This document shows positions 862 through 43,166 of a DNA stretch of 64,000 nucleotides, piece after piece. The notes under the pieces are model-generated. The model saw nothing but the letters and a program-made list of their open reading frames with translations. It ran no database searches and was not told the origin of the DNA. Source of the DNA: Lepidodermella squamata (taxonomy: Eukaryota > Animalia > Gastrotricha); assembly GCA_047495785.1 (NCBI GenBank), contig JBLDXI010000012.1, positions 1,302,001-1,366,000 of the forward strand, in the 5' to 3' direction. Both the position numbers and the translations under genes were made by a program. Numbering within the stretch: the first letter of the stretch is position 1; the number at the start of each line of letters is the position of its first letter.

Positions 862-1453
862 ATGCGCGCTGTTTTTGCCTTAGCTGCTGTCGTCCTAATG
901 GCTTTTGGTAACTGAAATTTTCGAACTCCCAGAGAGTGATTAGTTTGTTGATGATATCTATACTATAGCTCTCTCCGAGGTTGAGGCTGGCCGTGGTAAC
1001 AAAGGCAAAAGCGTTTCGAAGAGCGTCTCGATCAGCGTGTCGTACAACCGGCAGCCGAAGAAGCACGCGATGAAGAAGCGCCCGGCCAAGAAGGCCTTCG
1101 TCGCTGGGCGCAAGCACCGCCGTGCCTCGTTCTCCAAGTCCGTGTCCGCGTCGGTGTCGGCCCGCACGAACAAGCACACCCGCAAGGTCTCCACCAAGAA
1201 GTTCATGCGCGTGCACAAGCGCGGATCCATGTCCGGCTCGTTCTCGCGGTCGGGCTCCTTCGGCGGCTACAACAAGAAGGGCGGCAACAAGCGCCACGGT
1301 GGCAAGAAGTTCGGTGGCAAGAAGTTTGGCGGAAAGAAGCACGGTGGCAAGCACGGCAAGGGCCGCAAGGGCAGCAAGAGCGGCAGCTACTCGGCCTCCA
1401 ACAACTTCTCCTACTCGGTTGCCGTCGAGACCGGTGCTGCTCCCAGCAAATAA
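862..1453 (+). CDS. Secreted polybasic (Ser-X)n protein, copy K1 (exons 862-907, 969-1453)
   Basis: Exon 1 encodes signal peptide MRAVFALAAVVLMAF; phase-1 GT-AG intron at 908-968; exon 2 is near-identical to six other copies and has strong C/G third-position bias. Confidence 0.9.
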
Positions 1454-2009
1454 ATGAGAATTTATATTGAAAACTGTATGGCTCAGGCTGAATAATTATG
1501 ATTGATTTTGAATAAATTATAGAAGTATGAAAAATCTTAGCTTCTCTTGCGATACCGCGTCAGGGAGGGTCGGAAAACGTGTGTTCTTCACAATAGCTGC
1601 TGATAAGTTGAACGTGCATCCCATTTCAAGGCCATTTTGGGGATCCATAATTGCACAATAGAGATGAAGATCACGAGCCCATGAGGACAACATGTTTGAG
1701 ACAAACATTTCCATTTCTAAAATGAAAAATTTTGTCGCTCGAAATTTTTTATCTCGTTAGATAGTGGCTCGGCTGGTATTATTATCGCCATATTACTACA
1801 GAAACCCACTTTTATTGAATACTTATTCAAATGGTTATCAGAGGGTTATGAGATCGACACAATCATGGATATGAACTAAAATCGCTTACAATTTCAACCT
1901 CCTGGCTGAATCTACTGCCAAAGCCACGCCAAGTTTTTCTTTGTGTCACAATAGCTTCAATCGCGTGCAGCGCGAAAGCACGAGCCGGTGGACTATACTT
2001 CGCGAATCT

Positions 2010-2043
2010 AATCGCGTGGCGTTGTTGACGCAGGCCCTATAAA
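2010..2043 (+). promoter_or_regulatory. sHSP core promoter: AATCGCGTG motif plus TATAAA (2038-2043)
   Basis: The same AATCGCGTG...TATAAA arrangement precedes all three sHSP copies, including copy B (26599-26631), whose promoter is otherwise diverged. Confidence 0.6.
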
Positions 2044-2153
2044 TTGCGATTTATTTTTTCGTTTAAATCATCACCTGCTTTTGCAATTTAAAGCTCACAG
2101 CAATCTTCTCGCTTTCATTTTCGTTCGTGTTTTGATCCTTCTCAAACTCTAAA

Positions 2154-3460
2154 ATGGCCTGCTCATACACCTCGATCCCCTCGACCTTCGCCGCTGCCTC
2201 TGGCTACACCAGCCCGATGAACGTCGAGAGCCTGCTCCGCAACAAGGTCGACATCTACTCGCCGTCGTCTGTTGAGCGCAGCCTCATCAACGCCGCCGTC
2301 CCGACCCCGTTCGCCGCCGCCGGCATCCACAACGTCAACGCCTTCGCCTCGTCCCCGATCGCCTACAACACCTTCGCCTCGCCGATCGAGTGCGGAGCCG
2401 AGACCGGCCGCGTCTTCGGTGCCGAGTGCGGTGCCCAGCTGGCCGCCATCGTCGCCGCCCGCCTCAACACCTTCGTCGGCCAGGAGGTGGCCGTCCGCAT
2501 CGGCGCCCAGTGGGGAGCCGAGATGTGCGCCAAGCTGGGTGCCGAGCTCGCCGTCAAGCTCGTCAACGGCTGGCCGGTCGAGCAGTGCGCCCGCTGGTGC
2601 TACACCTTCGGAGCCGAGCACGGCGCCGAACTGGGTGCCATCATCGCCCAGCGCCTGGGTGCCATCTACACCGCCGAGTTCGCCGCCCGCATCGGCGCCG
2701 AGCTCTTCGCCGACGTCTGCGCCAAGCAGTGCTACGTCATCGCCGCCCGCGTCGCCGAGTCGCGCTTCGGTGGTGCCCGCCTCGCCAACAACTGGACCGG
2801 CTCGTTCGAGCGCTTCGGTGGCCTCAACTACCCGACCACCTTCGGCCCCTTCGGCGCCAACACCTGGTCGAACAGCCTGTCGGCTGACAACAAGCTGTAC
2901 AACATCGCCTTCCGCCCGTCCTCCGAGGTCGAGCTCTACACCCTGACCCACCCGATCCGCATGATCGACGTCGAGGGCAACCGCCAGCTGTACCTGTGCT
3001 TCGAGCTCAAGGGCTTCAAGCCTGAGGAAGTCACCGTCACCCTGAACAAGGCCGAGCGCGCCGTCGTCGTCGAGGCTGCCCACGAGGCCAAGGACGGCAA
3101 GGAGCACACCGTCACCCGCAAGTACTCGCGCAAGTTCGTCCTGCCCGAGGTTAGTAAATCATTTCAATTTCAATCAACACTGACTTTAAGCTTTCTTTAT
3201 CTTTCTAGACCCTTGCCAAGATCGACCTGACCAAGGTTGAGCTCAAGTCGTGCCTGACCCAGGAGGGCCACCTCGTCGTCGAGTGCCAGCTGCCGAAGAT
3301 GACCACCGAGGAGATCGCCAAGTGCCCGACCATGTCCGAGCTGTACAACAAGCTGCCCGCCTTCGGAGGCTTCAACGCCGCCGTCCAGGCCTTCGGTGGC
3401 ATCAACGCCATCAACCGCCGTACCTGCGATGTCAAGCCCGTCACCGTCAAGACCGCCTAA
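2154..3460 (+). CDS. Small heat-shock (alpha-crystallin domain) protein with long N-terminal extension, copy A (exons 2154-3149, 3209-3460; ~415 aa)
   Basis: ACD motifs FELKGFKPEEVTV, RKYSRKFVLPE and KSCLTQEGHLVVEC; C-terminal V-T-V (IXI/V-type) motif; phase-0 GT-AG intron. Confidence 0.9.
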
Positions 3461-3787
3461 ATGAAATCTAACGAGAAGATGAGCTATAATGCGCAATGCT
3501 AAAGAACTTTGCTTGAGAGAAATTGTGATACCATTCGCCATTTGATGTGATACTCTTGTGTTATTTGCAGTTTTCTCAATACAGTAAAACAAGATATGTT
3601 GCGTAAAAATGGTCCGATTCCTACTTTATTGCAAAAACTGAGCAAAATCGACAAAGACGAAGTTCGCCTCCACGCCGTGAGGCAATTTTTTGCACAAATC
3701 AATACATTTTTATATGCAAATGATCTATCTGGTTACTGGATGCGAGACCGCAGAAGGCCTTCCAAAAAAATTTGCTACTTTAATTTT

Positions 3788-4020
3788 AAGATCATACTTC
3801 TTGGGATCATTTCTTTATGTAGATTTGCCCCAACGTCAGCCTCATCTGACGACAAACCCAAACCGCGATGACGAGACGTGGTGACTGGCCCTGAGCGCGA
3901 ACTTGGCCGCACTTGACTGGCTATCATTAGCCGGTCTAGTCGGCCGTTGATGAACGTTCCGGCCTGGTGGCTCTTTAATTAGGGCCACTTCCGGAGGGGT
4001 CAGTCGCTTTCAGAGCGGCT
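3788..4020 (+). ncRNA. U3: U3 snoRNA, copy 1
   Basis: 5' AAGATCATACTTC..GGATCATTTCT (boxes A'/A), box C' GATGACGA, box B GAGCGCGAA, box C TTGATGAA, box D-like CAGA closed by a CCGC/GCGG terminal stem, then a T-run; ~233 nt; second copy at 41225. Confidence 0.88.
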
Positions 4021-4778
4021 TTTTTTAAATAGAAGCAAAACTTTACTTTCGAACCTGTTTTATGTAGCTGATAGTCATAAAATCAGTATTTTCCCTCTAA
4101 TTAGTTGTCTCTAAATATCAGTATATCTCCATCGAGCAAAGAATGAGATCGAACGTCCACTTTCTTGTTGGTAAAAATTTGTTCTTGTTGGTACCTGAAA
4201 AACGCCACCTTGCAGTAGGGTTCTGCTGACATTGACTAATGGCCACTGTCACCTGGAGTAAACCGCGCTTAATCAAGGCTTGCTTCGATTCAGTTTGCGA
4301 ACCTTCCCAGATTATCGTAGGGATGATTTCCAGTTTTCGAGGTTCAATATCGAGTTCGAATTTAGGGATGTCTTCTCGAGCTTTACTGATTCAACAAGAC
4401 AGGGCTAGGCCAACGGGCAACGGGTGCTAACAAAGGGGACAACAATTTAATTGGATCCGTTGCTTCATGTATAAGGCGCAATAGTTACTTATGAAGCCTG
4501 GTTTTTGGTAAATCAGCTGCTCGAAAATATATGGTGAACTAATTTGACGACTATATTCGGGTTTTTCAATCCAATTACCAGTTGAAGACCGCATATAAAT
4601 TTCTACTGACCAATTAGCTGAAAATTTGTGGTTGATGATTATACTGAATTTCAATTATTTCCTGCGCTTCGATAAATGGCAGTTGCGGTATAAAAGGACG
4701 ATGGATGTTGAAGAAAAACATCAATCCAGCTCGATTTGAAATAATATATAATTTTCCCTCCGAGATTAAACCTTGAAG

Positions 4779-5360
4779 ATGCGTGCTGTTTTCGCTTTTG
4801 CTGCTGTCGTTCTTTTAGCCCTCGGTAAATCTCTGAACACATCGTCTGGTTCAATAATCCAACTCGTTTTTTTACTTTCAGCTTTCTCCGAAGCCGAGGC
4901 TGGCCGCGGAAATAAGGGCAAAAGTGTCTCGAAGAGCGTCTCGATCAGCGTGTCGTACAACCGGCAGCCGAAGAAGCACGCGATGAAGAAGCGGCCGGCC
5001 AAGAAGGCCTTCGTCGCTGGGCGCAAGCACCGCCGTGCCTCGTTCTCCAAGTCCGTGTCCGCGTCGGTGTCGGCCCGCACGAACAAGCACACCCGCAAGG
5101 TCTCCACCAAGAAGTTCATGCGCGTGCACAAGCGCGGATCCATGTCCGGCTCGTTCTCGCGATCGGGCTCCTTCGGCGGCTACAACAAGAAGCATGGCAA
5201 CAAGAAGGGCCACGGTGGCAAGAAGTTTGGTGGCAAGAAAGGCAAGAAGGGTGGCAAGCACGGCAAGGGTCGCAAGGGCAGCAAGAGCGGCAGCTACTCG
5301 GCCTCCAACAACTTCTCCTACTCGGTTGCCGTCGAAACCGGTGCTGCTCCCAGCAAATAA
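4779..5360 (+). CDS. Secreted polybasic (Ser-X)n protein, copy K2 (exons 4779-4824, 4882-5360)
   Basis: Same signal-peptide exon and phase-1 intron as the other copies; upstream TATAAAA; downstream AATAAA. Confidence 0.9.
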   Translation: MRAVFAFAAVVLLALGKSLNTSSGSIIQLVFLLSAFSEAEAGRGNKGKSVSKSVSISVSYNRQPKKHAMKKRPAKKAFVAGRKHRRASFSKSVSASVSARTNKHTRKVSTKKFMRVHKRGSMSGSFSRSGSFGGYNKKHGNKKGHGGKKFGGKKGKKGGKHGKGRKGSKSGSYSASNNFSYSVAVETGAAPSK

Positions 5361-5615
5361 ATAATTTCAATAAAAACTTTGCTTCAAAGATGATAATTTA
5401 TTCCATGATCTGAAATCTGAAGAATAAAATACAGAAATATCTCTATACTCCAGTATATCCTAATATTGCAATTGATTTGGAGGATGAAGGGAGCCCATTT
5501 TAGGAAAGAAATTAGCATTATTCAGCTAATTCCATTTTGAATATACAAATGAGACCGGTCGAAATCTCATCGCAATTTGTTTCGGTATTTATGGCCGGTC
5601 CGATTGTGTCAGAAT

Positions 5616-5632
5616 GTCAATCTTCGGATTGG

Positions 5633-5671
<39 letters not shown>

Positions 5672-5722
5672 GGCCCCTGCGCAAGGATGACACGCAAAAT
5701 CGTGAAGCGTTCCATATTTTTT
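5616..5722 (+). ncRNA. U6: U6 spliceosomal snRNA, copy 1
   Basis: 5' hairpin GTCAATC-TTCG-GATTGGC, ACAGAGA box, AGC triad, ISL GGCCCCTGCGCAAGGATGAC, 3' CGTTCCATATTTT Pol III terminator; ~107 nt. Confidence 0.97.
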
Positions 5723-5927
5723 TTCTTTATTTCACATTTCACAGTCGTAAAATAATTGCAAAATATGGACTGTATTGCATGATAGAAACGCCTGCATCTA
5801 AATATCTTCCGTGGCTTTGTACCCTGCGGCGTGTAAATTATCTGAAAATATTTGATCACCACTAAAATTCCAATTTTAATGTTATTTGATCAACAAGGTC
5901 CAGGCGAAACTCATTTTATCCATCGGT

Positions 5928-5991
5928 GTTACCTTAGCAACGATACATTACCTTAGCACGTTACGAACGTAACGAACGTTACCTTAGCACC
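5928..5991. repeat. Short tandem repeat cluster (TTACCTTAGCA x3 with ACGAACGT units)
   Basis: Directly visible repeats. Confidence 0.6.
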
Positions 5992-6493
5992 ATTTTACTT
6001 GGTAATTTGTGGTTCAATTTTTTTCAAAATTAAAATTAAATCTTTTCATCAGGATTCAGTCACTGGTTGCAAGCTGGCGACTCGTTCCGCGCTTTAATCT
6101 ATCCGACCTCTGTTCTTTTAGTCTCGGAATAATCAAAATTAGCGCCTCCGTTTACGCAATCGCCCCAACTTTTGATACCGATAGAGTTTCATTCATCTAC
6201 GGCTTGGTCAGATTATTGGACCTTTGGCTGCCGGATTTCCAGCTACAACACTTCCGTTCGGCCTTTGGTGGGTTTCTTCGTTGCCTTACACTTACAACTA
6301 CCGAACTCAGCTGCCTATAATAATTCTGCAATTGCAAGTCAACCGTGAGTTTAATACTCACAATTTCCGTTAAAAGAAAATGACATCACAAATGTTTTTC
6401 ATTTTTTCAAGCTTTTATTTTGAAAAAATGCACATCAACATGGAAAATTAAATCACTAGATAAAAGTCAGTCTATTATTAGTTCAAGTAATCT

Positions 6494-8434
6494 TTAATCA
6501 ACTTCTTCGACAGTCGGGCCACGGTTGGTTGACGTCGAGCCAGCCGAGCGTGACTGATTGCCGCCGTCGGCCTTGCCAGGGTTGCTCGAAGAGCTGTTGC
6601 CGCCATGCAGTTTCGCCATAATTGGCGAGCAGACCTTCTGCAATTCCTGCGACTTGTACTCGATCTCGTCCTTCTCGGCGGTCGTGTTGCGATCGAGCCA
6701 CGAAATCACCTCCTGGCACTTGTCCTTGACAGTCTGCTTGTCACTCGCCGGCACATTCTCGCCCGCATCATCAACGGCTTGCTTGTACGAGTAGGCAAGG
6801 TGTTCGAGGCCGTTTCGAGCCGCAACTCGTTCCCGCTGCTTGTCGTCGTCGGCCTTGAATTTCTCGGCCTGAGCCACCATTCGCTCGACTTCTTCCTTCG
6901 ACAGCCGCTTTTCGTTCGTGATTTTGATCTTGTTCGATTTTCCAGTCGCCTTTTCGACGGCTGAAACGTTGAGGATGCAATTCGCGTCGATGTCGAACGT
7001 GACCTCGATTTGCGGGACACCGCGAGGCGCCGGCGGGATTCCGGTCAGGTCGAAGCGGCCCAACAAGTTGTTGTCCTTCGTCATCGCTCGCTCGCCCTCG
7101 TAGACCTGGATCGTCACGGCCGATTGATTGTCCGAGTACGTCGTAAAGGTCTGTGTGGCTCGAGTCGGCACTTTCGAATTGCGCTCCAGCAACTTCGCCA
7201 TCACCCCTCCAGCGGTTTCGATGCCGAGACTGAGCGGGATAACATCGACCAGCAGGACATCCTTGACAGTGTTGTCGGTCACGCCTGAGAGAATTGCAGC
7301 TTGAACAGCGGCGCCATACGCGACGGCCTCGTCCGGGTTGATCGACTTGTTGAGAGGCTTGCCCATGAAGTCGGTCAATAGCTTCTGCACCTTCGGAATG
7401 CGAGTCGAACCACCGACAAGCACGACCTCGTCGATCTTTGACTTGTCCAGCTTGGCATCTCGCAGGGCCTGCTCGACTGGTTGCATCGTCTTCTGGAACA
7501 GATCATTGCACAGCTCTTCGAAGCGAGCTCGCGTGATTTTCGAGTAGAAATCGACGCCTTCGTGCAGCGAGTCGATCTCGATGTTCGCCTCGGTGCTGCT
7601 CGACAGGGCTCGTTTCGCGCGTTCGCAGGCGGTTCGAAGGCGGCGCAGGGCTCGCGAGTTCTTCGATATGTCCTTGCCGTATTTCCGCTTGAATTCGTCG
7701 ACGAAGAAGTTGACCATGCGATTGTCAAAGTCCTCACCGCCCAGGTGAGTGTCGCCTGACGTAGCCAGCACTTCGAAGACACCGCCATCAACTGACAGGA
7801 TAGAAACATCGAAGGTTCCACCGCCAAGGTCGAAAATTAGGACCTTTTTCTCCTGCGACTGATGTTGTTTGTCGAGCCCGTAGGCGAGAGCAGCCGCCGT
7901 CGGCTCGTTAATGATTCGCATGACGTTGAGACCAGCAATCGCACCAGCGTCTTTCGTCGCCAGTCGCTGCGAGTCGTTAAAGTAGGCCGGAACCGTGATG
8001 ACGACATCGCGCACCTTGTGGCCCAGGTACGCCTCGGCGGTCTCTTTCATCTTGAGTAAGACCATGGACGAAATTTCCTCGGGCGCGAATCGCTTCGGCT
8101 CGCCCTTGTACTCGACCTCGATTTTCGGCTTGCCCGCCTCGTTGACAACCTTGAACGGCCAGTGCTTCATGTCGCTTTGGACGATCGGGTCGTCGAACCG
8201 CCGGCCGATGAGCCGCTTCGCGTCGAATACCGTGTTCTGCGGGTTCATCGCGACCTGGTTCTTGGCGCCGTCGCCGATCAGTCGCTCGTTGTCGGTGAAC
8301 GCGACGTAGCTGGGCGTCGTTCGGTTGCCCTGGTCGTTGGCAATTATTTCGACCTTGCCATTCTGGTAGACACCGACGCAAGAATACGTCGTGCCCAGGT
8401 CAATGCCAATAGCTCGTGAAGTTGATGTAGACAT
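6494..8434 (-). CDS. hsp70: Cytosolic, probably stress-inducible Hsp70 (intronless)
   Basis: Signatures [22 protein letters not shown] and [14 protein letters not shown]; C-terminal GPTVEEVD; first ATG at 8434 (the ORF track begins at an upstream non-ATG codon). Confidence 0.97.
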
Positions 8435-8558
8435 TGCAGGGATAATCAAGCAATATCAGTGAAACAATGGTTTAAAAGCGCAGTTGAAAACTTGTAGAAA
8501 GATTGCAAGTTCGATTTTGCTTTGAGAGAGGATGCTGAGGGTCAGCGGCCTTCGGGAA

Positions 8559-8622
8559 TATATACTGATTAAAGAACATTCTAGATAAATCAAGAAAATT
8601 CCAGAATGTTCGAGAATGTTCT
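8559..8622 (-). promoter_or_regulatory. Hsp70 promoter: TATA box and heat-shock elements
   Basis: TATATA at 8559-8564; alternating nGAAn/nTTCn arrays GAAcaTTC (8574) and GAAaaTTCcaGAAtgTTCgaGAAtgTTC (8594-8621). Confidence 0.9.
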
Positions 8623-10810: not shown

Positions 10811-11401
10811 ATGCGTGCTGTTTTCGCTCTTGCTGCTGTCGTTCTCTTGGCCCTCGGTAGAAATTTGAACACATAGCCTGGTTTAATAATCTCGCTAATT
10901 TTTCTAATACTTTCAGCTTTCTCCGAAGCTGAGGCTGGCCGCGGAAATAAGGGCAAAAGTGTTTCGAAGAGCGTCTCCATCAGCGTGTCGTACAACCGGC
11001 AGCCGAAGAAGCACGCGATGAAGAAGCGCCCGGCGAAGAAGGCCTTCGTCGCTGGGCGCAAGCACCGCCGTGCCTCGTTCTCCAAGTCCGTGTCCGCGTC
11101 GGTGTCGGCCCGCACGAACAAGCACACCCGCAAGGTCTCCACCAAGAAGTTCATGCGCGTGCACAAGCGCGGATCCATGTCCGGCTCGTACTCGCGGTCG
11201 GGCTCCTTCGGCGGCTACAACAAGAAGGGCGGCAAGAAATTCGGCGGAAAGAATAAGTTTGGCGGCAAGAAGTTTGGTGGCAAGAAGGGTGGCAAGCACG
11301 GCAAGAAGGGCCGCAAGGGCAGCAAGAGCGGCAGCTACTCGGCCTCGAACAACTTCTCCTACTCGGTTGCCGTCGAAACCGGTGCTGCCCCCGCTAAATA
11401 A
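10811..11401 (+). CDS. Secreted polybasic (Ser-X)n protein, copy K3 (exons 10811-10856, 10917-11401)
   Basis: Same structure as K1/K2; TATATAA upstream. Confidence 0.9.
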
Positions 11402-11650: not shown

Positions 11651-11667
11651 GTCAATCTTCGGATTGG

Positions 11668-11706
<39 letters not shown>

Positions 11707-11756
11707 GGCCCCTGCGCAAGGATGACACGCAAAATCGTGAAGCGTTCCATATTTTT
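11651..11756 (+). ncRNA. U6: U6 snRNA, copy 2
   Basis: Identical to copy 1 through the T5 terminator. Confidence 0.97.
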
Positions 11757-14488: not shown

Positions 14489-15229
14489 TTTTTCGTTGCA
14501 ATACTTTTAAACCGAATTAATATATCAGACTTGCAACGACGCAACGTTTTTGCGGCAAATAGCTGCGCTATTGATTCATTTCATAGCAGAGGTTATTCAT
14601 TCAATTCATGGTTATAATGAATAAGGAATGAATGAATGCGGTTAATATGAATAAGCATGAAATGAATCGTTAGCAGCTATTTGCCACGTGTGGTTTCTTT
14701 TATCCGGCCCTCATTGATGTCTCATGATAACTGGTGTCTTCTTTTGATTTCTCAATTGTTCCTCTTACTATTCTCATTAAAATTCTCGCACATTTTCCGG
14801 CCCGCCGGTGTTTCCTCCGCGCGCGCTCCTATTGTCTGGTTGAATTTACGCGCATTGCGCGTCCTTTTATTGCGTAATTGCAGCTTTCCTCGCGCGATGC
14901 AAAATCACAAAACTTCTCACTATTCTCACTATTCTCACTTGAACTTGTAAAAACTGGCTATAATTTTTCTCAGACTTTTCTCTCATTTGTCAACATTTAG
15001 CATTATACGTGCTAACCTGATATGTGCTCTGAAAGGTCAGTCTCCTGAGACCTAAGTACGAGCTTAGTAGGATCCTACTTTTACAGCTAAAACAGCTAAA
15101 ATTAGGGCGTTTTTCAAATCGAAAGGGATTTAGGAATTATGCAAAAAGCAAAAAGCAGACTCTTCAAAGACGTGATAGACAGCGGCTTCAGTGATCGCCA
15201 ACGGAGGAGGATAAATAAAACGTTTTCAT

Positions 15230-15882
15230 TGTTAACCGGGGAAATTCTAGGCACAATGATGTTTGATGATCCGAGTTTTTCGTACTCGAAACAAATCTGG
15301 TTCGCGCCGATCTTGGCCAAAAATCGGGCTCTTGTCCCAGAATTGACCTGCCCAACCTCGGGATGTCAGGTCAAATTACTCGGCATTGATATCACAAAAG
15401 GCAAGAAGATGGCTGTCTCTAATACCTACGCCATGATCAAAGAACCAAGTGATGCTTCCAGCATTGCTACGGATGGAAATTTAATCTTTAAACTGGATAG
15501 CCTGAACTCTAAAATGATTGTTACGGGCGTCGCCGATGGAAGGGGGGTGTCTGAATTCTCCTGTGATACCACGGGCCAGGGAAGTAGAAGTTCGCGGCCT
15601 TACACCGTCGTCACGGATGGTTTCATCTTCTCCGAGGCTTGCAAAGGACTGTCGCTGATGGATAGGAAAACTGGCAAGTTGATCGACAAAACGCACGACA
15701 CGGTATCTGGGCTGTCCTATTACAAGAATGCTGTCTATTTCCGGTATTATGATGCCGGTACTAAGAAGCAAGCAATCGGATCTCTCGGCTTGCAAGCAGC
15801 TAAATCTATTAGCCCGAAGTTTGTTGGAAGTTTTGGAATCACCTTTCTGTGTGCTATTTTTGCAGCTTTCATGGACTTCTAA
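15230..15882 (+). pseudogene. 5'-truncated paralog of the secreted beta-propeller gene at 34961-36337
   Basis: Aligns by eye from TGEIL onward (GIDITKGKKMAV, ATDG, VTDGFIFSEACKGL, GLSYY, YFRYYD, KSISPK); upstream sequence is unrelated and has no signal peptide. A distant missing exon cannot be excluded. Confidence 0.65.
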
Positions 15883-16681: not shown

Positions 16682-17269
16682 ATGCGTGCTGTTTTCGCTC
16701 TTGCTGCTGTCGTTCTCTTGGCCCTCGGTAGAAATTTGAACACATAGCCTGGTTTAATAATCTCGCTAATTTTTCTAATACTTTCAGCTTTCTCCGAAGC
16801 TGAGGCTGGCCGCGGAAATAAGGGCAAAAGTGTTTCGAAGAGCGTCTCCATCAGCGTGTCGTACAACCGGCAGCCGAAGAAGCACGCGATGAAGAAGCGC
16901 CCGGCGAAGAAGGCCTTCGTCGCTGGGCGCAAGCACCGCCGTGCCTCGTTCTCCAAGTCCGTGTCCGCGTCGGTGTCGGCCCGCACGAACAAGCACACCC
17001 GCAAGGTCTCCACCAAGAAGTTCATGCGCGTGCACAAGCGCGGATCCATGTCCGGCTCGTACTCGCGGTCGGGCTCCTTCGGCGGCTACAACAAGAAGCA
17101 TGGCAACAAGCGCCACGGTGGCAAGAAGTTCGGCGGCAAGAAGTTTGGAGGCAAGAAGGGCGGCAAGCACGGCAAGGGTCGCAAGGGCAGCAAGAGCGGC
17201 AGCTACTCGGCCTCCAACAACTTCTCCTACTCGGTTGCCGTCGAAACCGGTGCTGCTCCCGCTAAATAA
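16682..17269 (+). CDS. Secreted polybasic (Ser-X)n protein, copy K4 (exons 16682-16727, 16788-17269)
   Basis: Exon 1 and intron identical to K3; differs in the GGKK repeat block. Confidence 0.9.
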
Positions 17270-17518: not shown

Positions 17519-17535
17519 GTCAATCTTCGGATTGG

Positions 17536-17574
<39 letters not shown>

Positions 17575-17624
17575 GGCCCCTGCGCAAGGATGACACGCAA
17601 AATCGTGAAGCGTTCCATATTTTT
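17519..17624 (+). ncRNA. U6: U6 snRNA, copy 3
   Basis: Identical to copy 1 through the T5 terminator. Confidence 0.97.
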
Positions 17625-23754: not shown

Positions 23755-26477
23755 ATGATTTTGCTTATTATTTCTCTGATAGTAAAAACTAATGCTCAAC
23801 AGTTTGCGACAAACTCGAGTTCCTTGACTGACAACTGGTGGGATGACATCGTTCCTAAGCCATTGTCGCAAGCTATTTCGCCAAGTTCAGCCTCTTGCCG
23901 GAATGTCTCAGTTAACGAGTATATTATAGCAAGGGATGTGTTCGGTAAGCACGAAACCTGGGTCAGGCCGCTGCTGAAAAGCAACAAGCCGATCAATATC
24001 GAAATCAGACTGGTTCTATCCTCAATCAACGACGTGGTTTGTTGAGATTTTCCTTCTTCAAACATAATCACAGTTGAGACTGACTTCAGCACGTAGTATC
24101 AGAGTACTAGGCCTATTCAAAAGGTCCATCAAAAATGTTATAAGATTGCGCGACCAAACATTGAGTCATTCTGCGAATTTGTAAGAAACGACGTAAATTC
24201 CAATTATTCGCAAATTTATTTCTAAATAAATAAGGGCCCATTGATCATCGGCGGGTCATCATTATGTCACGTCAAGGGTTTTGATTTCATTCATGGGCAG
24301 CACCGGTCTCGACAGCGACGGAGTATGAGAAATTGTTGGAGGCCGAGTAGCTGCTGCTCTTGCTGCCCTTGCGACCCTTGCCGTGCTTGCCACCGTGCTT
24401 CTTGCCGCCAAACTTCTTGCCACCGAATTTCTTGCCGCCCTTCTTGTCGTAGCCGCCGAAGGAGCCCGAGCGCGAGTACGAGTCGGACATGGATCCGCGC
24501 TGGTGCACGCGCATGAACTTCTTGGTGGAGACCTTGCGGGTGTGCTTGTTCGTGCGGGCCGACACCGACGCGGACACGGACTTGGAGAACGAGGCACGGC
24601 GGTGCTTGCGCCCAGCGACGAAGGCCTTCTTGGCCGGGCGCTTCTTCATAGCGTGCTTCTTCGGCTGCCGGTTGTACGACACGCTGATCGAGACGCTCTT
24701 CGAAACACTTTTGCCCTTGTTACCACGGCCAGCCTCGGCTTCGGAGATGGCTAAAAATTGAATAGTTGTATGCATCAATTAAAAGAAATATCAAAATATA
24801 CCAATAGCCATGAGAACCACTGCAGCTATGATGAAAACAGCGCGCATGTTTTAGGGAAATTCTGGTATTAGAAATGAGTTGAAAAATCAAGAAAATAGAT
24901 CTGCTGTTCTAAGCCTAAAATCGAATCGACTTTATACCGTGGAAAAATCTAGTTTCAGCCTATTTTTCAATTTAATTCACACTCGTGATGGGGTTTACAA
25001 ATTAGCGTTTGATCGAGTCCGGCAATAATGGATCAGTAATAGGCTTCAATATTATATGGCATGGATGATGATTTTTCGGAAAGAAATTGAAAATTTTGAG
25101 ATTAAAGGCTGATTTTATTTGAGATTGAAAAAATTAAAAAAATGTAATGTAGGCGCTTCTTAATTTTCAGGTATAACCATTCTCTTTATTTCAAAAGCAA
25201 TTTTTTCTGTTTTTTTTTCCAAAGATCGAGCGGGAAAAGTCGTTGAAGCTCTCTGGCTATCTGCTTTTTGTGAGAAATTTTACATATAATTTTGATTTTG
25301 TATCTAAGCATCCCGATTTCATGTTTAGTACTGGTTCGACGAATTTCATTCATGGAACAAGACTTTCCCTCACGCTTGCGTCCCCAGCGTAACTCTTCCT
25401 CATGACAAGATTTGGATACCAGAAATAGCCATGATCAACTCGGAGCAGCACTACGAGCTGCTGTTGATGTATGGCGAAGAAAAGGTGCGAGTTTCCAGCA
25501 ACGGCTACGTCTCCTACCGGCCAGGCGGAACCTTCCGAGCCTTCTGCGATTTCGACCTCCGGCTTTTCCCATTCGACTCGCAAAACTGCACGTTGATTCT
25601 CGAAAGTTGGCGATACACGATCGAATTTCAAATTTTCCACTTTGGCGACACAATTCAACAAAGATGGTGGATAGAAAATGAGCAGTGGCAGTTGACTGGA
25701 ACTGCCCAGCGTTCAAAACGGGTTCAATACGTAATTCCAACTAATACCTTTTCAAGGGTCGAGTTCGATCTGACAATCAAGCGGAAAATCGGATACTACT
25801 TGATCAACGTCATAGTCCCATCTTTGATCATTTCCCTAGCTGAGGTTGCGACCTTCACCGCCGAAGTGAACGATAGCGAGAAGTTGGAGCTGTCTTTCAC
25901 CTGTCTACTGGCTTATGGCGTTTTCCAACTTATGATAATCGACGACATACCTCGGTCTTCAGATCGAATTCCTTTGCTTTGCTACTACATCGATTTGTCA
26001 ATGCTTTACATTTGTCTGGCGATGTTAGGCGAGGGTGTTGTCTTCGTTTGTTATCGAAAAAGCCGCGATCAACGCCGTCAACAGAAAGTGCCGGAGTGGC
26101 TGTACCGGGGTGCTGAGGTGATTGCGCCGGTTTTCAGGGTCAAAAAGCCGCGGAAACCTCTGATCAGCGACGAAACAGGGCCGGATTACAACGCAATGTT
26201 GACTGGAACTTATTTCTCTTTATACCACAAGGAGGGCGAATTATTCGGCCTAAATCAGGACAAAGATGATACGAATGGCGGGAGGAAGCTCTTTGCCAGT
26301 GAACAGGCAGAAAGAGATCAGAAAAGGGCCATGGAGATCTATCGAATTCATCGATGGGAATTTATAGCAGATGTAATGGATCGATTTGTTCTTGTGTCTT
26401 ACATTTTTTTTATCGCAGCGACTCCAGTTTTCTTGTTCTATATAGTGCCCAATTATAGTGATCTATTCTACTCCTGA
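23755..26477 (+). CDS. Divergent Cys-loop ligand-gated ion channel subunit (nAChR-like, non-alpha), gene 1 (exons 23755-24036, 25225-25269, 25329-26477)
   Basis: Signal peptide, VRP, WFDE..W, WIPE, Cys loop CDFDLRLFPFDSQNC, YYLINVIVPS (M1), four TM helices, ADVMDR before M4; the 45-nt exon 2 matches the paralogs at 55894 and 58558. Confidence 0.9.
24287..24847 (-). CDS. Secreted polybasic (Ser-X)n protein, copy K5, nested antisense in channel intron 1 (exons 24847-24802, 24750-24287)
   Basis: Signal exon MRAVFIIAAVVLMAI, phase-1 intron, intact ORF; the most divergent copy (C-terminus AAHE). Confidence 0.85.
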
Positions 26478-28043: not shown

Positions 28044-28427
28044 ATGAAAGCCACATCCAAAGAGAAGATGAGCAATAATGCGCAATGTTAAAGAACTTTG
28101 CTTGAGAAAAAGTGTGATACCATTCGATGTGATACTCTAGTGCTATTTGCAGTTTTCCTCGAGACAGTAAAACAAGAGATGTTGCGTAAAAATTGCCTGC
28201 TATGACTCAGTCCGATGGTTGAATTTTAGTTACGTTTTAGTTGGTCTAACAGACTAGTAGTGTCCAGGTTCGCCTCCACGTCGCGAGCCATTTTTTATAT
28301 CCAAATAATCGGTATTATGCAAATATTGTGTGCGAAAAGAGCAAGCAAAATAATCAGGAATTAGAGTTATAGGGTCATGGTAATCATATACAGGAATATT
28401 GTTTGTAGGAACTTGCGTATCAAGAGC

Positions 28428-34960: not shown

Positions 34961-36337
34961 TTAGAAGGCACTGAAAACGGCGAAAATAGCACAAAGAGAA
35001 GTGATTCCTAAGCTTCCAACAGACTTCGGGCTGATAGATTTACTTGCTAGTAAGCTAACAGCTCCGATTGCTTGCTTATCCAGTTCTTCATCATAGTACC
35101 GGAAATACAGCGCATTGTTATAATAAGACAGCCCAGCGACCTGCTCATGCGTTCCATCAATGATGATGCCAGTTTTTTTGTACATGACGGTTAACCCTTT
35201 ACATATTTCGGAGAAGATGAACTCATCCGTTACTATAGTGTTAGGCCGTGCACTTCTACCCTTGCCCCACTTGACACATGGAAAAACCGCGACCAAGTTT
35301 CCGGTGATAACGTCAATGACAACCAATTCCTTAGTAGAATATCTCGGCGCATAGATGTGCTTTCCATCCGTGGCCATATCGGCAGGTGAATCGGTCCAAG
35401 ATGAGCTGAATTTGTAAGTCCAATCGACAGCCATCTTCGCGCCTCTTGTTATGTCAATACCGTGGAATTTCACCTCACAATTCGTGAAGATGTCGACGAG
35501 GCAGGTCTTAGAAGCGACAATAGCTCGATTTCCAATTAACAACGGTATGAACCTGCTTGCTGCCGAGGTAAACAAGGTGGGGTCTTGAAATTGAAGTGTG
35601 TCAAGAATTTCCCCACTTTCGGCGTCTATCTGTGTCAACGAGAAGGCATGTGATACAAAGAGTCGAGAATCTTCGCTTAACGAAGCTGCGTAAAGTACGG
35701 AATTGTCAACAGTCGGAATGGTGACTGTCACTGTTGCATTCCACAGCATTTTTTCCTTCGCATTCCATTCGTAAAACCCAATAACATTTTTCGACTGCTC
35801 GGCAACCGTGTACCAGAATTCCGAGCTTATTGCATCGGAAAAGTCAAATCCCTCGCTGTACGTATTCGTATCAAATTGGAGCAGTGTCATACTTCCGAAG
35901 TGTTTGTTGCTCAAATCGACTGAAATCTGCCTGACAGTAGCCGATTGCTTCGAGTTTAAAGTCTCGCATCGAACAAAGAGCGAAACTTTACCGCCGAGTT
36001 CTGCTATTATCGGCTGGCCGCATACCAAATATTTCACACAACCAGCTAAGCAGATACGAGTAACGCGACGGCCATTGACCGCGCTGAAGACGTTAAGCTG
36101 GCCGTAACCCTCGATTTGAAAAATCAATCCGTCGTGGGCAACGATTTGTCCAATTCCCATTGTTTTGAAATCGAGCGTTGCGTTAAACTTCCGCTTAAGC
36201 ACAACGCATTTACTCGCCGCGATAGACTCGGCTTTGTAACCAGTGTGAGCTTGATCTCCGCCTAAGTTGGTCCATGAAGATCGAAAGTCAGCATAAGCTG
36301 AAGCCAGTAGTAAGGAAATTATGGTCAGCGATTTCAT
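34961..36337 (-). CDS. Intronless secreted, possibly GPI-anchored beta-propeller (PQQ-like repeat) protein, 458 aa
   Basis: Signal peptide MKSLTIISLLLASAYA, motif WTNLGGDQAHTGY, propeller-type blades (LNVFSAVNGR, IDAESGEIL, IDVITGNLV), hydrophobic C-terminus; paralog fragment at 15230. Confidence 0.75.
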   Translation of the reverse strand: MKSLTIISLLLASAYADFRSSWTNLGGDQAHTGYKAESIAASKCVVLKRKFNATLDFKTMGIGQIVAHDGLIFQIEGYGQLNVFSAVNGRRVTRICLAGCVKYLVCGQPIIAELGGKVSLFVRCETLNSKQSATVRQISVDLSNKHFGSMTLLQFDTNTYSEGFDFSDAISSEFWYTVAEQSKNVIGFYEWNAKEKMLWNATVTVTIPTVDNSVLYAASLSEDSRLFVSHAFSLTQIDAESGEILDTLQFQDPTLFTSAASRFIPLLIGNRAIVASKTCLVDIFTNCEVKFHGIDITRGAKMAVDWTYKFSSSWTDSPADMATDGKHIYAPRYSTKELVVIDVITGNLVAVFPCVKWGKGRSARPNTIVTDEFIFSEICKGLTVMYKKTGIIIDGTHEQVAGLSYYNNALYFRYYDEELDKQAIGAVSLLASKSISPKSVGSLGITSLCAIFAVFSAF

Positions 36338-38140
36338 TGCAGTTGCACTGCTGTGGCCAGTTAGCAGTTAGTAGGAAACTGATATGAATATATTGCCGAA
36401 ATTTTGAGCATATAATATAGACTGGAGTCTGGAATTGATTGATATAGCAATCGCAGTAAAAGACTGATAAAGCTTGAGGCTGTTGTCTGTGAATCGAACC
36501 TTGAAGTAGGCGGACTTATCTGCTCAGCGCGCTTCATACACATAGGGGTATACAAACTTTATCAGCAAAGAGCGCTCTATATAGTATATAGTTACGCCCT
36601 TCACCCAGAACGAGGCCAGCCAGCCATACTGTCCTTGTACGAGTTATGATAGAAATGATTCATCTGTACAATCATCTTGGTGTGTGACATTTTATACTTT
36701 TCGGGTGTGTCTGCACAAGAGATCAAGCCAACCGAAGGATTGGTGGTGGCCGAGTCGCATTTCTCGCAAACGCTGCTGCTTCGAAACGTCGAAAATGACC
36801 CGCGCGATGAGCCACCCGTAAAGCAAGCTAAACCCATGCCGATCTTCAATTTCTCGAATTGCTCCGTCGTTATTAACAATTAATCCGGCCCAAACACTTG
36901 TTTTAAAGTTTAAACATTCTAATAAAGGTTATTCACTTGTTCACTCGTTTGGTCAGAGTCTGAAGGTTGTAGTAAAGGGACTGGGAACGGAAATTGAAGT
37001 TGTGCAACATTATTTCAGGTGAGAGGTTTTCCCGAATTTTCGAGAGCATCAATTGATTTTCGAAAATAAAAAATCCACCCTAATCGTTTGAGCGGGCAGA
37101 AACATCGGGCAGAATCACTTTTTCCGTCTAGGCAAAAAATAACCAACTGGGCAGGAACGTATCAACCTGCCAGCAAGCTGTTGCATGTAATCCGACTATC
37201 GGCCTGAAGACGCTAAGAAGTGCATTTCTCCTATGATTGAGGCTAAAAAACGATACAGAAATAGTGTTTCTGTATTCCTGTACAATACAGAAACACTTTT
37301 ATTAAGACGGACTTTTTATTATCGCATTTTCCTATATAAATGGCGTACAAGATCACTTTTCCCCGCACTTTCTAGCTACGTTTCTCCGAGTTTTTAGCAG
37401 ATACAGAGGAGAAAAGCAATCTCGGATTTACTCCGAATACAGAAACACTTTTCTTGTACTCATGACTGTATTCATCTTCGGTTCCTGCGGAACCTCGATT
37501 CATACAGTCATTCGTACAAGAAAAGTGTTTCTGTATTCTGAGCCATCCAAGATTGCTTAATTGAATGATGCTATACCTGCCCAATTAGCTTTGATTAGCG
37601 GAAGTTATTTCGTCTAAATCACGGCAAATTTTTCACTGTAATCCGGATAACTTTCCCAGACCTTCGAGTGGGCCTTTCACTTACTAATTGGGAATCGCGA
37701 TTCGCTGTCACTTTTCAGGCGCATGGTCGTCAGGTGTATTGACTGGGTAATGACAGGCCTTTGAATTATGGCAACACGGAGCTGTTTGGATGTGATGGAA
37801 TAAAAAATAATTCAGCATTAAGCAATGCACACCTGCACAATGCATGCAATGAACAATGTTACCGACTGAAAATTGTATGACTTGAAGACTGATGAGCAAT
37901 AGAAAGCTGACTACAGAATGAGATAGATCAAATTTGAATCAAAATTTAATTGCGATCTCATTAAATCAGTTACGCTGTGTAGAGATTTCCAATTAGCAGA
38001 TCGTTAGCAGCTTATAATTCAGTTGCTACGCTTCAATATGCTCTCTTGGTATATAATCTCGACGCGATTTCGGAGATGTATCACCATTCAAGTTCCATTC
38101 GAGCTATCCATTCCTCGTTTTCTCAATTCAAACCATAAAG

Positions 38141-38715
38141 ATGCGCGCTGTTTTCGCTTTGGCCGCTGTCGTTCTCTTGGCCCTCGGTAAATATTTGAAC
38201 ACATCGTGTCAGGTCCAATAATCTTACTCGTTTTCTTACTTTCAGCTTTCTCCGAAGCTGAGGCTGGCCGTGGTAATAAGGGCAAAAGTGTCTCGAAGAG
38301 CGTCTCCTTCAGCGTGTCGTACAACCGGCAGCCGAAGAAGCACGCGATGAAGAAGGCCTTCGTCGCTGGGCGCAAGCACCGCCGTGCCTCGTTCTCCAAG
38401 TCCGTGTCCGCGTCGGTGTCGGCCCGCACGAACAAGCACACCCGCAAGGTCTCCACCAAGAAGTTCATGCGCGTGCACAAGCGCGGATCCATGTCCGGCT
38501 CGTACTCGCGATCGGGCTCCTTCGGCGGCTACAACAAGAAGGGCGGCAACAAGCGCCACGGTGGCAAGAAGTTTGGCGGCAAGAAGTTCGGAGGCAAGAA
38601 GCACGGTGGCAAGCACGGCAAGGGTCGCAAGGGCAGCAAGAGCGGTAGCTACTCGGCCTCCAACAACTTCTCCTACTCGGTCGCCGTCGAGACCGGTGCT
38701 GCTCCCGCTAAATAA
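38141..38715 (+). CDS. Secreted polybasic (Ser-X)n protein, copy K6 (exons 38141-38186, 38246-38715)
   Basis: Same structure; in-frame loss of RPAKK between two AAGAAG repeats. Confidence 0.9.
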
Positions 38716-39586
38716 AAACATTTCAGAAAGAAAAGCGTCGTATGTGCTTCTTCAATGATAATTTATTCCGAAGTCTAATATTGAAATTTGAAATAAAGTT
38801 GAAATGTTCAACGACCCAGAGATTCGACCTAGTAGTTAGCAAGACCTTTGAAAAATAAGTCATAATTCATAAGGTAACACTTGCCGCAGATGAAACAGTT
38901 GTAGTGTCGACAGCATCCAACCCCCCGTGTCCCGTGTCTGCGCCCCGTGTGAACTCTACCAGCGTGAATCTTGAGGCCGCGTTATAAAAGTTTTATTGCA
39001 AACCTTAAAAAGCATCTTGCTGCAATTAAAATCAATATTCTGTTTATTTCAAAACTGAAAATTGTTGGCCGAATAATTTATAGGTCGCGCGTAATTTTTC
39101 AAACTACGGGCTCTATTGAGCAATTTTCTTTTTACACAACGGTAAAAAGAGGCTCAGCGCTATGCTGGGGATGATCCCCTCAAAACACATCAGTTACTAA
39201 CTTTGAACAACAACCAAAAATCAAAAGTCTAGTCGCGGTTATCAAAGTGTTATATGGATATTATGGATGTGAACCTAAATCACTCCAAACTTAAACCTCT
39301 AGCTACATCATAGAGTGATTCATTCCGTTCTCTATGAGATACAGCCACTGCTGGAGCTATGCCAATTTTTCCTCCTTGTCACAATGGCTTCAATCGCGTG
39401 CAGCGCGAAAGCACGAGCCGGTGGAATATACTTCGCGAATCTAATCGCGTGGCGTTGTTGACGCAGGCCCTATAAATTGCGATTTATGTTTTCGTTTAAA
39501 TCATCACCTGCTTTTGCAATTTAAAGCTCATAGCAATCTTCTCGCTTTCATTTTCGTTCGTGTTTTGATCCTCTTCAAACTTTAAA

Positions 39587-40884
39587 ATGGCCTGCTCATA
39601 CACCTCGATCCCCTCGACCTTCGCCGCTGGCTACACCAGCCCGATGAACGTCGAGAGCCTGCTCCGCAACAAGGTCGACATCTACTCGCCGTCGTCTGTT
39701 GAGCGCAGCCTCATCAACGCCGCCGTCCCGACCCCGTTCGCCGCCGCCGCCGGCATCCACAACGTCAACGCCTTCGCCTCGTCCCCGATCGCCTACAACA
39801 CCTTCGCCTCGCCGATCGAGTGCGGAGCCGAGACCGGCCGCGTCTTCGGTGCCGAGTGCGGTGCCCAGCTGGCCGCCATCGTCGCCGCCCGCCTCAACAC
39901 CTTCGTCGGCCAGGAGGTGGCCGTCCGCATCGGCGCCCAGTGGGGAGCCGAGATGTGCGCCAAGCTGGGTGCCGAGCTCGCCGTCAAGCTCGTCAACGGC
40001 TGGCCGGTCGAGCAGTGCGCCCGCTGGTGCTACACCTTCGGAGCCGAGCACGGCGCCGAACTGGGTGCCATCATCGCCCAGCGCCTGGGTGCCATCTACA
40101 CCGCCGAGTTCGCCGCCCGCATCGGCGCCGAGCTCTTCGCCGACGTCTGCGCCAAGCAGTGCTACGTCATCGCCGCCCGCGTCGCCGAGTCGCGCTTCGG
40201 TGGTGCCCGCCTCGCCAACAACTGGACCGGCTCGTTCGAGCGCTTCGGTGGCATCAACTACCCGACCACCTTCGGCCCCTTCGGCGCCAACACCTGGTCG
40301 AACACCCTGTCGGCTGACAACAAGCTGTTCAACATCGCCTTCCGCCCGTCCTCCGAGGTCGAGCTCTACACCCTGACCCACCCGATCCGCATGATCGACG
40401 TCGAGGGCAACCGCCAGCTGTACCTGTGCTTCGAGCTCAAGGGCTTCAAGCCTGAGGAAGTCACCGTCACCCTGAACAAGGCCGAGCGCGCCGTCGTCGT
40501 CGAGGCTGCCCACGAGGCCAAGGACGGCAAGGAGCACACCGTCGCCCGCAAGTACTCGCGCAAGTTCGTCCTGCCCGAGGTTAGTAAATCACTGAACCTT
40601 CACCTACTTAAATGTTAATGCCATCTTTCTAGACCCTTGCCAAGATCGACCTGACCAAGGTTGAGCTCAAGTCGTGCCTGACCCAGGAGGGCCACCTCGT
40701 CGTCGAGTGCCAGCTGCCGAAGATGACCACCGAGGAGATCGCCAAGTGCCCGACCATGTCCGAGCTGTACAACAAGCTGCCCGCCTTCGGAGGCTTCAAC
40801 GCCGCCGTCCAGGCCTTCGGCGGCATCAACGGCGTCAACTGCCACGTCAACGCCGTCAAGCCCGTCACCGTCAAGACCGCCTAA
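39587..40884 (+). CDS. Small heat-shock protein with long N-terminal extension, copy C (exons 39587-40579, 40633-40884)
   Basis: As copies A and B. Confidence 0.9.
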
Positions 40885-41224
40885 ATGAAAGCCACATCCA
40901 AAGAGAAGATGAGCAATTATGCGCAATGTTAAAGAACTTTGCTTGAGAGAAATTGTGATACCATTTGATGTGATACTCTAGTGTTATTTGCAGTTTTCCT
41001 CGAGACAGTAAAACAAGATATGTTGCGTAAAAATGGTCTGAGAATTCAGTATCATTCTTATTTAATTGCAAAAGATCGTGGAATTCGACAAAGAAGAAGT
41101 TCGCCACCACGCCATGAGCCATTTTTTTTGCAAAAATCCATACATTTTTGTATGCAAATGACCTATCTGGTTGCTGGATGCGAGACCGCAGAGGGCCTTT
41201 CAAAAACTTTGCTACTTTAATTTT

Positions 41225-41466
41225 AAGATCATACTTCTTGGGATCATTTCTTTATTTAGATTTGCCCCAACGTCAGCCTCATCTGACGACAAACCCAAAC
41301 CGCGATGACGAGGCGTGGTGACTGGCCCTGAGCGCGAACTTGGCCTCACGAGGCCGGCGACCTTTCCAGGGTGGCTGGGCTCGAGGTGGCCGTTGATGAA
41401 CGTTCCGGCCTGGTGGCTCTTTAATTAGGGCCACTTCCAGAGGGGTCAGTCGCTTTCAGAGCGGCT
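41225..41466 (+). ncRNA. U3: U3 snoRNA, copy 2
   Basis: All boxes as in copy 1; different hairpin between boxes B and C. Confidence 0.88.
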
Positions 41467-42329
41467 TTTTTTAATGAAAAACAAAACCTGAATCGTTCCT
41501 CAAAACCACGTTTGAAAATATCTCAGAATAATAAATATTTTTTAGGTTTCCGTTAGAGATGATATAGCCATCAAGCAATCACTTCATCAATTTATCATGA
41601 AATCAGAAATCATTAAATCAGTCCGACGAATCTCAAAGTTATCAAAGCATGATGATATCCGCCTATTCGTCCAGTCGCCGGCGAATTATTCTTTTTAGCA
41701 TTAATAAGCTATAACTTCAGCAATCCATTTTATTATTGATAAAAAATCCCAAGTAAAAATTGGACAGAGGCTGCTGTAACTTGGATTAATCTGCACTCAA
41801 CCAAGGCTAAATCACAACCTCGTTTTGGCAAGTGATTTATTTTGTGCAGCTTCGTAGGTGTGCAGAGGAATTGTTTTGAGCTTTGGAGTCTCGAAATTCA
41901 ATAACAATTTCTTCGAATCGAGATACCTACTGTAAAAGGTAGGGAATTTTGCTCAACAATTTTCCGAAATTTAATTTTATTGTTTGATGTAGGTAGGTAC
42001 ATCAAACAACAGTCCGTTGCTAATATGTTATAGGCTCAATGATGACTTGTGAAGGCTATATCAGCTTGAATACATGGTAAAATGTGAAATAATTTGTTAG
42101 GATGGTTTTTCGAGTTATCAATCCAATTACCAATTGAAGACCCGATGCATTTCTACTGGTAACCAATTAGCCGACAATTATATTGATGATTACGCTCGAT
42201 TCAATTATTTGCCGCGCTTCGAGAATTAACGATTCCGGTATATAAAGACGATGGATATTAAAGAAAAATCATCAAGCTAAATTTGACTTAATCAATATAT
42301 AATTTTCGCTCAAATATCAAACCATAAAG

Positions 42330-42898
42330 ATGCGTGCTGTTTTCGCTTTGGCTGCTGTCCTTCTTATGGCTCTCGGTAATCTTTGAAAGCATTGTTTGGT
42401 CCAATAATCTTACTCGTTTTCTTACTTTCAGCTTTCTCCGAAGCTGAGGCTGGCCGTGGTAATAAGGGCAAAAGTGTCTCGAAGAGCGTCTCCTTCAGCG
42501 TGTCGTACAACCGGCAGCCGAAGAAGCACGCGATGAAGAAGCGCCCGGCCAAGAAGGCCTTCGTCGCTGGGCGCAAGCACCGCCGTGCCTCGTTCTCCAA
42601 GTCCGTGTCCGCGTCGGTGTCGGCCCGCACGAACAAGCACACCCGCAAGGTCTCCACCAAGAAGTTCATGCGCGTGCACAAGCGCGGATCCATGTCCGGC
42701 TCGTACTCGCGGTCGGGCTCCTTCGGCGGCTACAACAAGAAGCACGGCAGCAAGCGCCACGGTGGCAAGAAGTTTGGCGGCAAGAAGGGTGGCAAGCACG
42801 GCAAGGGTCGCAAGGGCAGCAAGAGCGGCAGCTACTCGGCCTCCAACAACTTCTCCTACTCGGTCGCCGTCGAGACCGGTGCTGCTCCCGCTAAATAA
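42330..42898 (+). CDS. Secreted polybasic (Ser-X)n protein, copy K7 (exons 42330-42375, 42432-42898)
   Basis: Same structure; promoter resembles K2, 3' UTR resembles K6. Confidence 0.9.
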
Positions 42899-43110: not shown

Positions 43111-43127
43111 GTCAATCTTCGGATTGG

Positions 43128-43166
<39 letters not shown>

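Follow-up and report, generated by a model that had tools for sequence, protein, structure and literature searches.

Results

Seven two-exon genes in a 64-kb window

The window analysed here, a 64,000-nt (64-kb) stretch of contig JBLDXI010000012.1 from Lepidodermella squamata to which the coordinates of all features refer, carries a family of seven genes, K1 to K7, whose small and extremely basic products are predicted to be secreted and which we tentatively interpret as building blocks of an extracellular material. An earlier note on this DNA had proposed a seven-copy family, and this is borne out: a tblastn search with K3 as the query and a motif scan combined with splice-site parsing return the same seven loci and no others, between 862 and 42898, each an intact two-exon gene, and the tblastn search of the window revealed no additional K-gene fragments or pseudogenes. 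Six of the seven copies lie on the forward strand, and K5 is inverted.

K1, 862..1453 (+): exon 1 862-907, intron 908-968, exon 2 969-1453; 176 codons; promoter TATTTAT, not a canonical TATA box
K2, 4779..5360 (+): exon 1 4779-4824, intron 4825-4881, exon 2 4882-5360; 174 codons; TATA box at -90
K3, 10811..11401 (+): exon 1 10811-10856, intron 10857-10916, exon 2 10917-11401; 176 codons; TATA box at -89; AATAAA overlapping the stop codon
K4, 16682..17269 (+): exon 1 16682-16727, intron 16728-16787, exon 2 16788-17269; 175 codons
K5, 24287..24847 (-): exon 1 24847-24802, intron 24801-24751, exon 2 24750-24287; 169 codons; inverted
K6, 38141..38715 (+): exon 1 38141-38186, intron 38187-38245, exon 2 38246-38715; 171 codons; KKRPA lost in frame
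K7, 42330..42898 (+): exon 1 42330-42375, intron 42376-42431, exon 2 42432-42898; 170 codons

All seven genes are compact and share one layout, in which a 46-nt exon 1 coding for the signal peptide (Met-Arg plus a 15-residue hydrophobic core) is separated by an intron of 51-61 nt from an exon 2 of 464-485 nt. The introns run from GT to AG, with TTTCAG or TTTTAG at the 3' end in six of the seven, and the spliced products are 169-176 residues long. Reading frames are intact and splice sites conserved in every copy, and all indels are in frame. The most divergent copy is K5, which encodes two Asp and two Glu, has QR in place of a KR site and ends in TGA. A TATA box stands 89-91 nt 5' of the ATG in all copies except K1, and the ATG is preceded by AAAG in five copies, by GAAG in K2 and by AAAC in K5. 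At the other end, AATAAA overlaps the stop codon in six of the seven genes and a second polyadenylation signal follows 58-77 nt downstream in all of them. A further candidate promoter motif, CGCTTCGAnAAT, occurs at four K promoters; it has five matches across the window, a number that 6 of 100 shuffles reach, and was rejected as not significant.

A cysteine-free polycation with alternating-serine blocks

The signal peptide, judged by hydropathy and by the (-3,-1) small-residue cleavage rule, comprises 22 residues, with an MR n-region and a 15-residue h-region of mean Kyte-Doolittle hydropathy 2.8-3.2. Cleavage is predicted after A/V-E-A (-3 to -1) in all copies, leaving a mature chain that starts GRGNKGK. 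This chain has no second hydrophobic segment (maximum 19-residue hydropathy <=0.13) and neither a membrane anchor nor a retention signal, its C-terminus being APAK, APSK or AAHE, and by these rules K is predicted to be a classical secreted protein.

Mature K is 147-154 residues long (15.8-16.4 kDa), lacks Cys altogether and contains 27-32 Lys, 12-13 Arg, 5-7 His, 26-27 Ser, 20-24 Gly and 11-13 Phe plus Tyr. Thr is almost absent (four residues), Arg accounts for 8% and Lys plus Arg for 28% of the chain, and Ser, Thr, Gly, Ala, Lys and Val together make up 67-70%. The 39-44 Lys plus Arg face a single acidic residue in six copies and four in K5, with an isoelectric point (pI) of 11.5-12.0 and a net charge of +35 to +43. 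Four strictly alternating (Ser-X)5-6 blocks, each of 10-12 residues, hold 21-23 of the serines; their X residues read VKVIVY, FKVAVA, MGYRGF and KGYAN, and between one block and the next lie basic spacers and a GGKK(F/H) repeat, which in-frame indels have left with different numbers of units in different copies. The alternation goes far beyond composition: S-x-S triplets number 19-20, whereas 20,000 composition-preserving shuffles averaged 3.5-3.9, had at most 12 and in no case reached the observed count. The SS dipeptide is missing from six of the seven copies, and one N-x-S sequon is conserved. The earlier note had read several of these features correctly, namely the signal peptide with cleavage after xEA, the Cys-free mature chain of ~150 residues and the four alternating-Ser blocks with their spacers and repeat; its count for K3, about 44 Lys plus Arg against one acidic residue, proves exact (32 Lys and 12 Arg against one Glu). 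An AlphaFold2 model built from the seven-sequence alignment has a mean predicted local distance difference test (pLDDT) score of 52, a predicted template modelling (pTM) score of 0.10 and no secondary structure at all, and the K monomer is thus predicted to be disordered.

Concerted evolution of the coding sequence

Between K copies, coding identity amounts to 89-98%; the introns and 200-nt flanks show 40-55% identity in most pairs and are essentially saturated. One pair departs from this pattern, K4 being a recent 5.87-kb tandem duplicate of K3 with flanks 95-96% and an intron 100% identical. Within the exon 2 alignment (A3), columns 64-300 are nearly invariant, with variation limited to the ends and the GGKK region, and columns 120-248 form a 129-nt core that is invariant in all seven copies (11036..11164 (+) in K3 coordinates). 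This core codes for the end of basic spacer 1, (Ser-X)n block 2 and basic spacer 2, and a 35-mer inside it is exact in every copy.

At columns 26 and 62 of the same alignment all four allele combinations are present, which argues for exchange between the copies. RNA structure was considered as a cause of the invariant core and discarded, as the core shows no unusual fold (z = 0.03); gene conversion together with selection for a uniform product therefore best explains the invariance. Among the variable codons, 33 differ by synonymous changes only and 17 by replacements, seven of the latter lying in the signal peptide. We suggest that this homogenisation, as read from the sequences, points to selection for dose rather than diversity.

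Codon bias of the K genes

The earlier note had described third positions that are almost all C or G inside AT-rich DNA, which agrees with what we measured: GC content at third codon positions (GC3) is 0.80-0.83 in the K genes, where AAG supplies 92% of the Lys codons, and the intron and flanks have 32-37% GC. Within the window a comparable bias occurs only in chaperone genes, GC3 being 0.73 in an HSP70 gene and 0.88-0.92, the strongest in the window, in three genes resembling small heat-shock proteins (sHSPs); nine other open reading frames (ORFs), encoding receptors, an ankyrin protein and others, range from 0.45 to 0.58. The K codon bias is in line with translational selection acting on genes of very high expression and would, indirectly, indicate high expression. 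Some part or other of 38000-43300 is represented in 13 public sequencing runs, including ten of small size that are guessed to be RNA and a poly(A) metatranscriptome from fresh water.

Search for relatives

Searches with the exon 2 product as the query matched no Pfam domain at E up to 0.1, and they gave no relatives among 5.8 billion protein clusters (word-seeded search), among 1.84 billion representative proteins (exhaustive phmmer, no length restriction, E up to 0.001), by ESM Atlas features, among PDB sequences or in JGI metagenome contigs (protein patterns and the exact 35-mer); an exact look-up of the unspliced K2 reading likewise found it not on record. The earlier note had called the family unrecognised and had named homology as a possible refutation, and the Pfam, protein and metagenome searches uphold that description. 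The lineage itself appears to be under-sampled, since a neighbouring, non-repetitive secreted-type protein of 458 residues (34961-36337) is likewise without relatives in the 5.8 billion clusters and the exact sequence of the HSP70 of the window is not on record either. The orphan status of K therefore means only that it has so far not been seen outside this genome. As a sequence family K is new as such; its design is of a known kind, that of low-complexity polycationic secreted material proteins.

Genomic neighbourhood

The window is animal DNA with short GT-AG introns and, besides the K genes, contains genes for an intronless inducible-type HSP70, for cys-loop receptors and for the small nuclear RNA (snRNA) U6 and the small nucleolar RNA (snoRNA) U3.

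5616-5721, 11651-11756, 17519-17624 and 43111-43216 (+): four U6 snRNA genes, 115 bits each
3788-4019 and 41225-41465 (+): U3 snoRNA genes, each just 3' of an sHSP-like gene (two of the three sHSP-like genes)
2154-3592, 26743-28085 and 39587-40926 (+): three near-identical sHSP-like genes, Pfam HSP20 at E ~1e-7
6494-8449 (-): HSP70, intronless, inducible-type
34961-36337 (-) and 15139-15882 (+): related ORFs with similar C-terminal hydrophobic tails, no Pfam domain
25431-26477, 56328-57245 and 58838-59929 (+): three pieces of cys-loop ligand-gated ion-channel genes
44953-46593 (+): ORFs like the N-terminal part of a latrophilin-type adhesion G-protein-coupled receptor, with a SUEL/galactose-lectin-like Cys pattern read by eye

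The K genes are interspersed among other genes in heavy use. The U6 genes lie ~215-255 nt downstream of K2, K3, K4 and K7, and two stretches, 862-5721 and 38141-43216, show the same succession of K, sHSP, U3, K and U6, a repetition suggestive of the duplication of a composite unit made up of highly used genes. The sHSP-like proteins have a long Ala/Gly/Glu-rich N-terminal region and no signal peptide, and no heat-shock element (HSE) was found within 500 nt upstream of their genes. The HSP70, whose best full-length public match is 82% identical and whose named matches of similar length, many of them from bivalves, reach ~72-78%, has a perfect contiguous array of nGAAn/nTTCn elements at 8569-8621, 135-185 nt upstream. 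Heat-shock co-regulation of K with its neighbours was accordingly rejected: the only such array is that of HSP70, with none at the K or sHSP promoters, and given the lack of an HSE at their promoters the K genes are not ordinary heat-shock genes.

The 458-residue ORF at 34961-36337 also has a signal peptide, and from their sequences it and the ORF at 15139-15882 may represent another lineage-restricted family of secreted or glycosylphosphatidylinositol (GPI)-like proteins. Two of the ion-channel pieces (56328-57245 and 58838-59929) form a tandem pair with 87-89% identical DNA; clusters matched by a ligand-gated channel query have Mollusca or Arthropoda as their commonest phylum. Together with the HSP70 matches, this agrees with a spiralian origin of the DNA but is not diagnostic of it.

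Discussion

Using gene parsing, comparison of the seven copies and large-scale homology searches, our work here describes a gene family whose product has the predicted features of a secreted material protein. The signal peptide, the lack of a fold and of Cys, the extreme charge, the amphipathic strands of alternating Ser and hydrophobic residues, the amplification and homogenisation of the genes and a codon bias at the level of chaperones lead us to posit that K is a lineage-restricted, dosage-amplified, conversion-homogenised, secreted and disordered block polycation that would serve as a bulk building block of an extracellular material, be it a glue or cement, an egg coat, a tube or a mucus coat. 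This interpretation, which draws on analogy with known material proteins, is tentative, and we would place it somewhat short of an even chance. The disorder predicted by the AlphaFold2 model would be typical of material-forming disordered proteins. For the bulk secretion proposed in the earlier note, the copy number, concerted evolution, TATA promoters, codon bias and predicted signal peptide all speak indirectly in its favour; the more particular role that it offered, as a glue, cocoon or extrusome protein, is an analogy of composition.

We hypothesize that, once the signal peptide has been removed, the Lys/Arg/His-rich spacers and GGKK(F/H) repeats would attach to surfaces of negative charge or to a polyanion acting as partner, candidates for which are sulfated glycans, phosphoproteins and biofilms. 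Such binding would combine electrostatic with cation-pi contacts, the latter involving the 11-13 Phe and Tyr residues, and might work particularly well in fresh water, where little salt is present. Cohesion could come from the four (Ser-X)n strands, each of which would show only Ser on one face and mostly aliphatic or aromatic residues on the other: after screening of the charge they could stack as beta-sheets between molecules, to which contacts between Lys and aromatic residues may add.

Several known adhesive systems share parts of this design. Caddisfly H-fibroin carries (pSX)n runs in which X is aliphatic or Arg and n = 4-5 (PMC4929942), and its phospho-beta-domain unit is (SX)nE, closed by Glu (PMC13267644). 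K is like it in having runs of n = 5-6, where n >= 4 defines the type, with aliphatic or basic X residues, Gly-rich or basic spacers and a putative freshwater secretion (PMC4929942, PMC13267644), but it is without the terminal Glu of (SX)nE and without a single S-x-E/D, its mass is 16 kDa rather than over 300 kDa, its net charge is far more positive and there is no sequence homology (0 matches at E up to 0.001 in the 1.84 billion representatives). Barnacle cp19k, a protein of ~17 kDa with a surface-coupling role, is biased to Ser, Thr, Gly, Ala, Lys and Val and has a pI of 10.5-10.6 in some species (PMC4552757). Mature K, at 15.8-16.4 kDa and with 67-70% of the same residues, is likewise basic and predicted to be secreted, but shows no similarity to it in either protein search and differs in its four Thr, 8% Arg and lack of Cys (Balcp19k has two), in its much higher charge and in the strict (SX)n periodicity of its blocks.

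The flatworm cohesive protein Mlig-ap1 has extremely basic KR regions and glues by charge, being released by a small anion (PMC6410801). It shares with K the low complexity of these regions, secretion (predicted in the case of K) and the lack of database relatives; unlike K, with its ~150 residues, no Cys and no Pfam domain, it is giant in size and combines C-type lectin, vWD and EGF domains in a region rich in Cys. In the sandcastle worm, polybasic Pc1/2/4/5 stand beside the phosphoserine protein Pc3, of which Pc3B is zwitterionic (PMC11277488). K resembles Pc1/2/4/5 as a small, predicted secreted, Gly/Lys/His-rich polycation suited to charge pairing with polyanions (PMC11277488), and would resemble Pc3B, with both charges in one chain, only if its 21-23 block serines were phosphorylated; the cement proteins of the worm have no homology with K and work in the sea rather than in fresh water. 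Wherever the sequence allows a test of membership, K falls outside these families: it is not homologous to them, it lacks the (SX)nE unit and it has no domain of Mlig-ap1. The earlier note had presented its own comparisons as analogies and not homology, and correctly so.

A number of observations weigh against the material interpretation. The canonical seed of secretory kinase is S-x-E, and the mature chains contain neither S-x-E nor S-x-D in any of the seven copies, which leaves phospho-Ser cross-linking without sequence support; the suggestion in the earlier note that the protein may become zwitterionic when phosphorylated is, for the same reason, pure conjecture. That 21-23 phosphorylated block serines would balance the 39-44 Lys plus Arg is a conjecture of arithmetic to which the sequence lends no support. 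No polyanionic partner for K was identified within the window, the adhesive comparisons are comparisons of composition, and the K protein was not found in public protein collections that include transcriptome assemblies. The codon bias, in turn, could partly reflect local or gene-class composition. Owing to gene conversion, the ratios of nonsynonymous to synonymous substitution rates (pairwise dN/dS 0.08-0.35) and the identity of the copies speak less strongly for purifying selection than would seem at first sight. A more specific proposal, that K is the main component of a new freshwater bioadhesive or egg cement in which a single small chain joins a polycation with phospho-Ser charge, coacervates by itself and sets by beta-sheet formation, strikes us as unlikely.

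K might instead be a cationic defence secretion, a polycation released into mucus, into the gut or onto the surface of the egg so as to bind, aggregate or permeabilise microbes. A predicted secreted chain with a net charge of +35 to +43 and interspersed His and aromatic residues would suit this role, the tandem amplification of the genes is common for immune effectors, and the failure to find a partner polyanion in the window is also in its favour. We nevertheless regard it as unlikely. Antimicrobial peptides (AMPs) are under ~10 kDa, with an amphipathic helix or a disulfide fold and usually an anionic pro-piece, and K has none of these features: at 16 kDa, without Cys and with no predicted amphipathic helix, it is unlike the known animal AMP classes, and with one Glu it lacks an anionic pro-piece of the sort that would neutralise a cation that is toxic. 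Its copies are, moreover, homogenised rather than diversified, and alternating strands of Ser and hydrophobic residues are not an AMP feature.

Two further alternatives seem to us improbable. Proprotein convertases could cut K as a polyprotein at RR or KR, releasing signalling, antimicrobial or self-assembling peptides headed by (SX)n blocks. Blocks 2 and 3 do lie within one residue of RKHRR-A and HKR-G sites (the hyphen marking the cut), and an NKR-H site is present in four copies; RKHRR, however, is the only site kept in all seven, as K5 has QR in place of KR and NKR is missing from three copies. There is neither a Gly-Lys-Arg amidation signal nor an acidic spacer, and codon bias of this strength in so many copies would be more in keeping with a bulk product than with a signalling peptide. 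Given a similarly small chance is a counter-ion function, in which K would condense secretory granules by packing polyanionic cargo (a mucin-like or sulfated glycan) and have no material role after release. The extreme charge of K would indeed require neutralisation during storage, and sandcastle-worm glands charge-balance polybasic proteins with sulfated polyanions inside granules (PMC11277488). Such a function leaves the conserved (SX)n strands unexplained, and on the present data it is not separable from the material interpretation itself. Finally, it is very improbable that K is an intracellular nucleic-acid- or chromatin-binding basic protein of the protamine or H1-like kind, with its hydrophobic exon misread, or a set of non-functional repeats: although its composition resembles that of nucleic-acid binders, and the Ser blocks are preceded by RRxS and KRxS sites like those of cytosolic basophilic kinases, every one of the seven copies retains a canonical signal peptide, with an AxA cleavage site and an exon to itself, the frames are all intact, synonymous changes exceed replacements, and promoters and poly(A) signals are present.

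Whatever the function of its products, the K locus is a clean case of concerted evolution that is confined to the centre of an exon and lies beside saturated introns and flanks. Our literature searches found no adhesive, egg-coat or tube proteins of rotifer-like micro-invertebrates; if K is indeed such a component, it would open up this field, and if it is the main component of a bioadhesive or egg cement as in the more specific proposal above, no earlier molecular component of adhesion would be known in these animals and K would offer a minimal design for wet glues. That design, a Cys-free and probably 3,4-dihydroxyphenylalanine (DOPA)-independent protein of 16 kDa, would join polycationic spacers and (SX)n strands in a single chain. 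Its recombinant production would be easy, as would tests of its coacervation and of its bonding under water.

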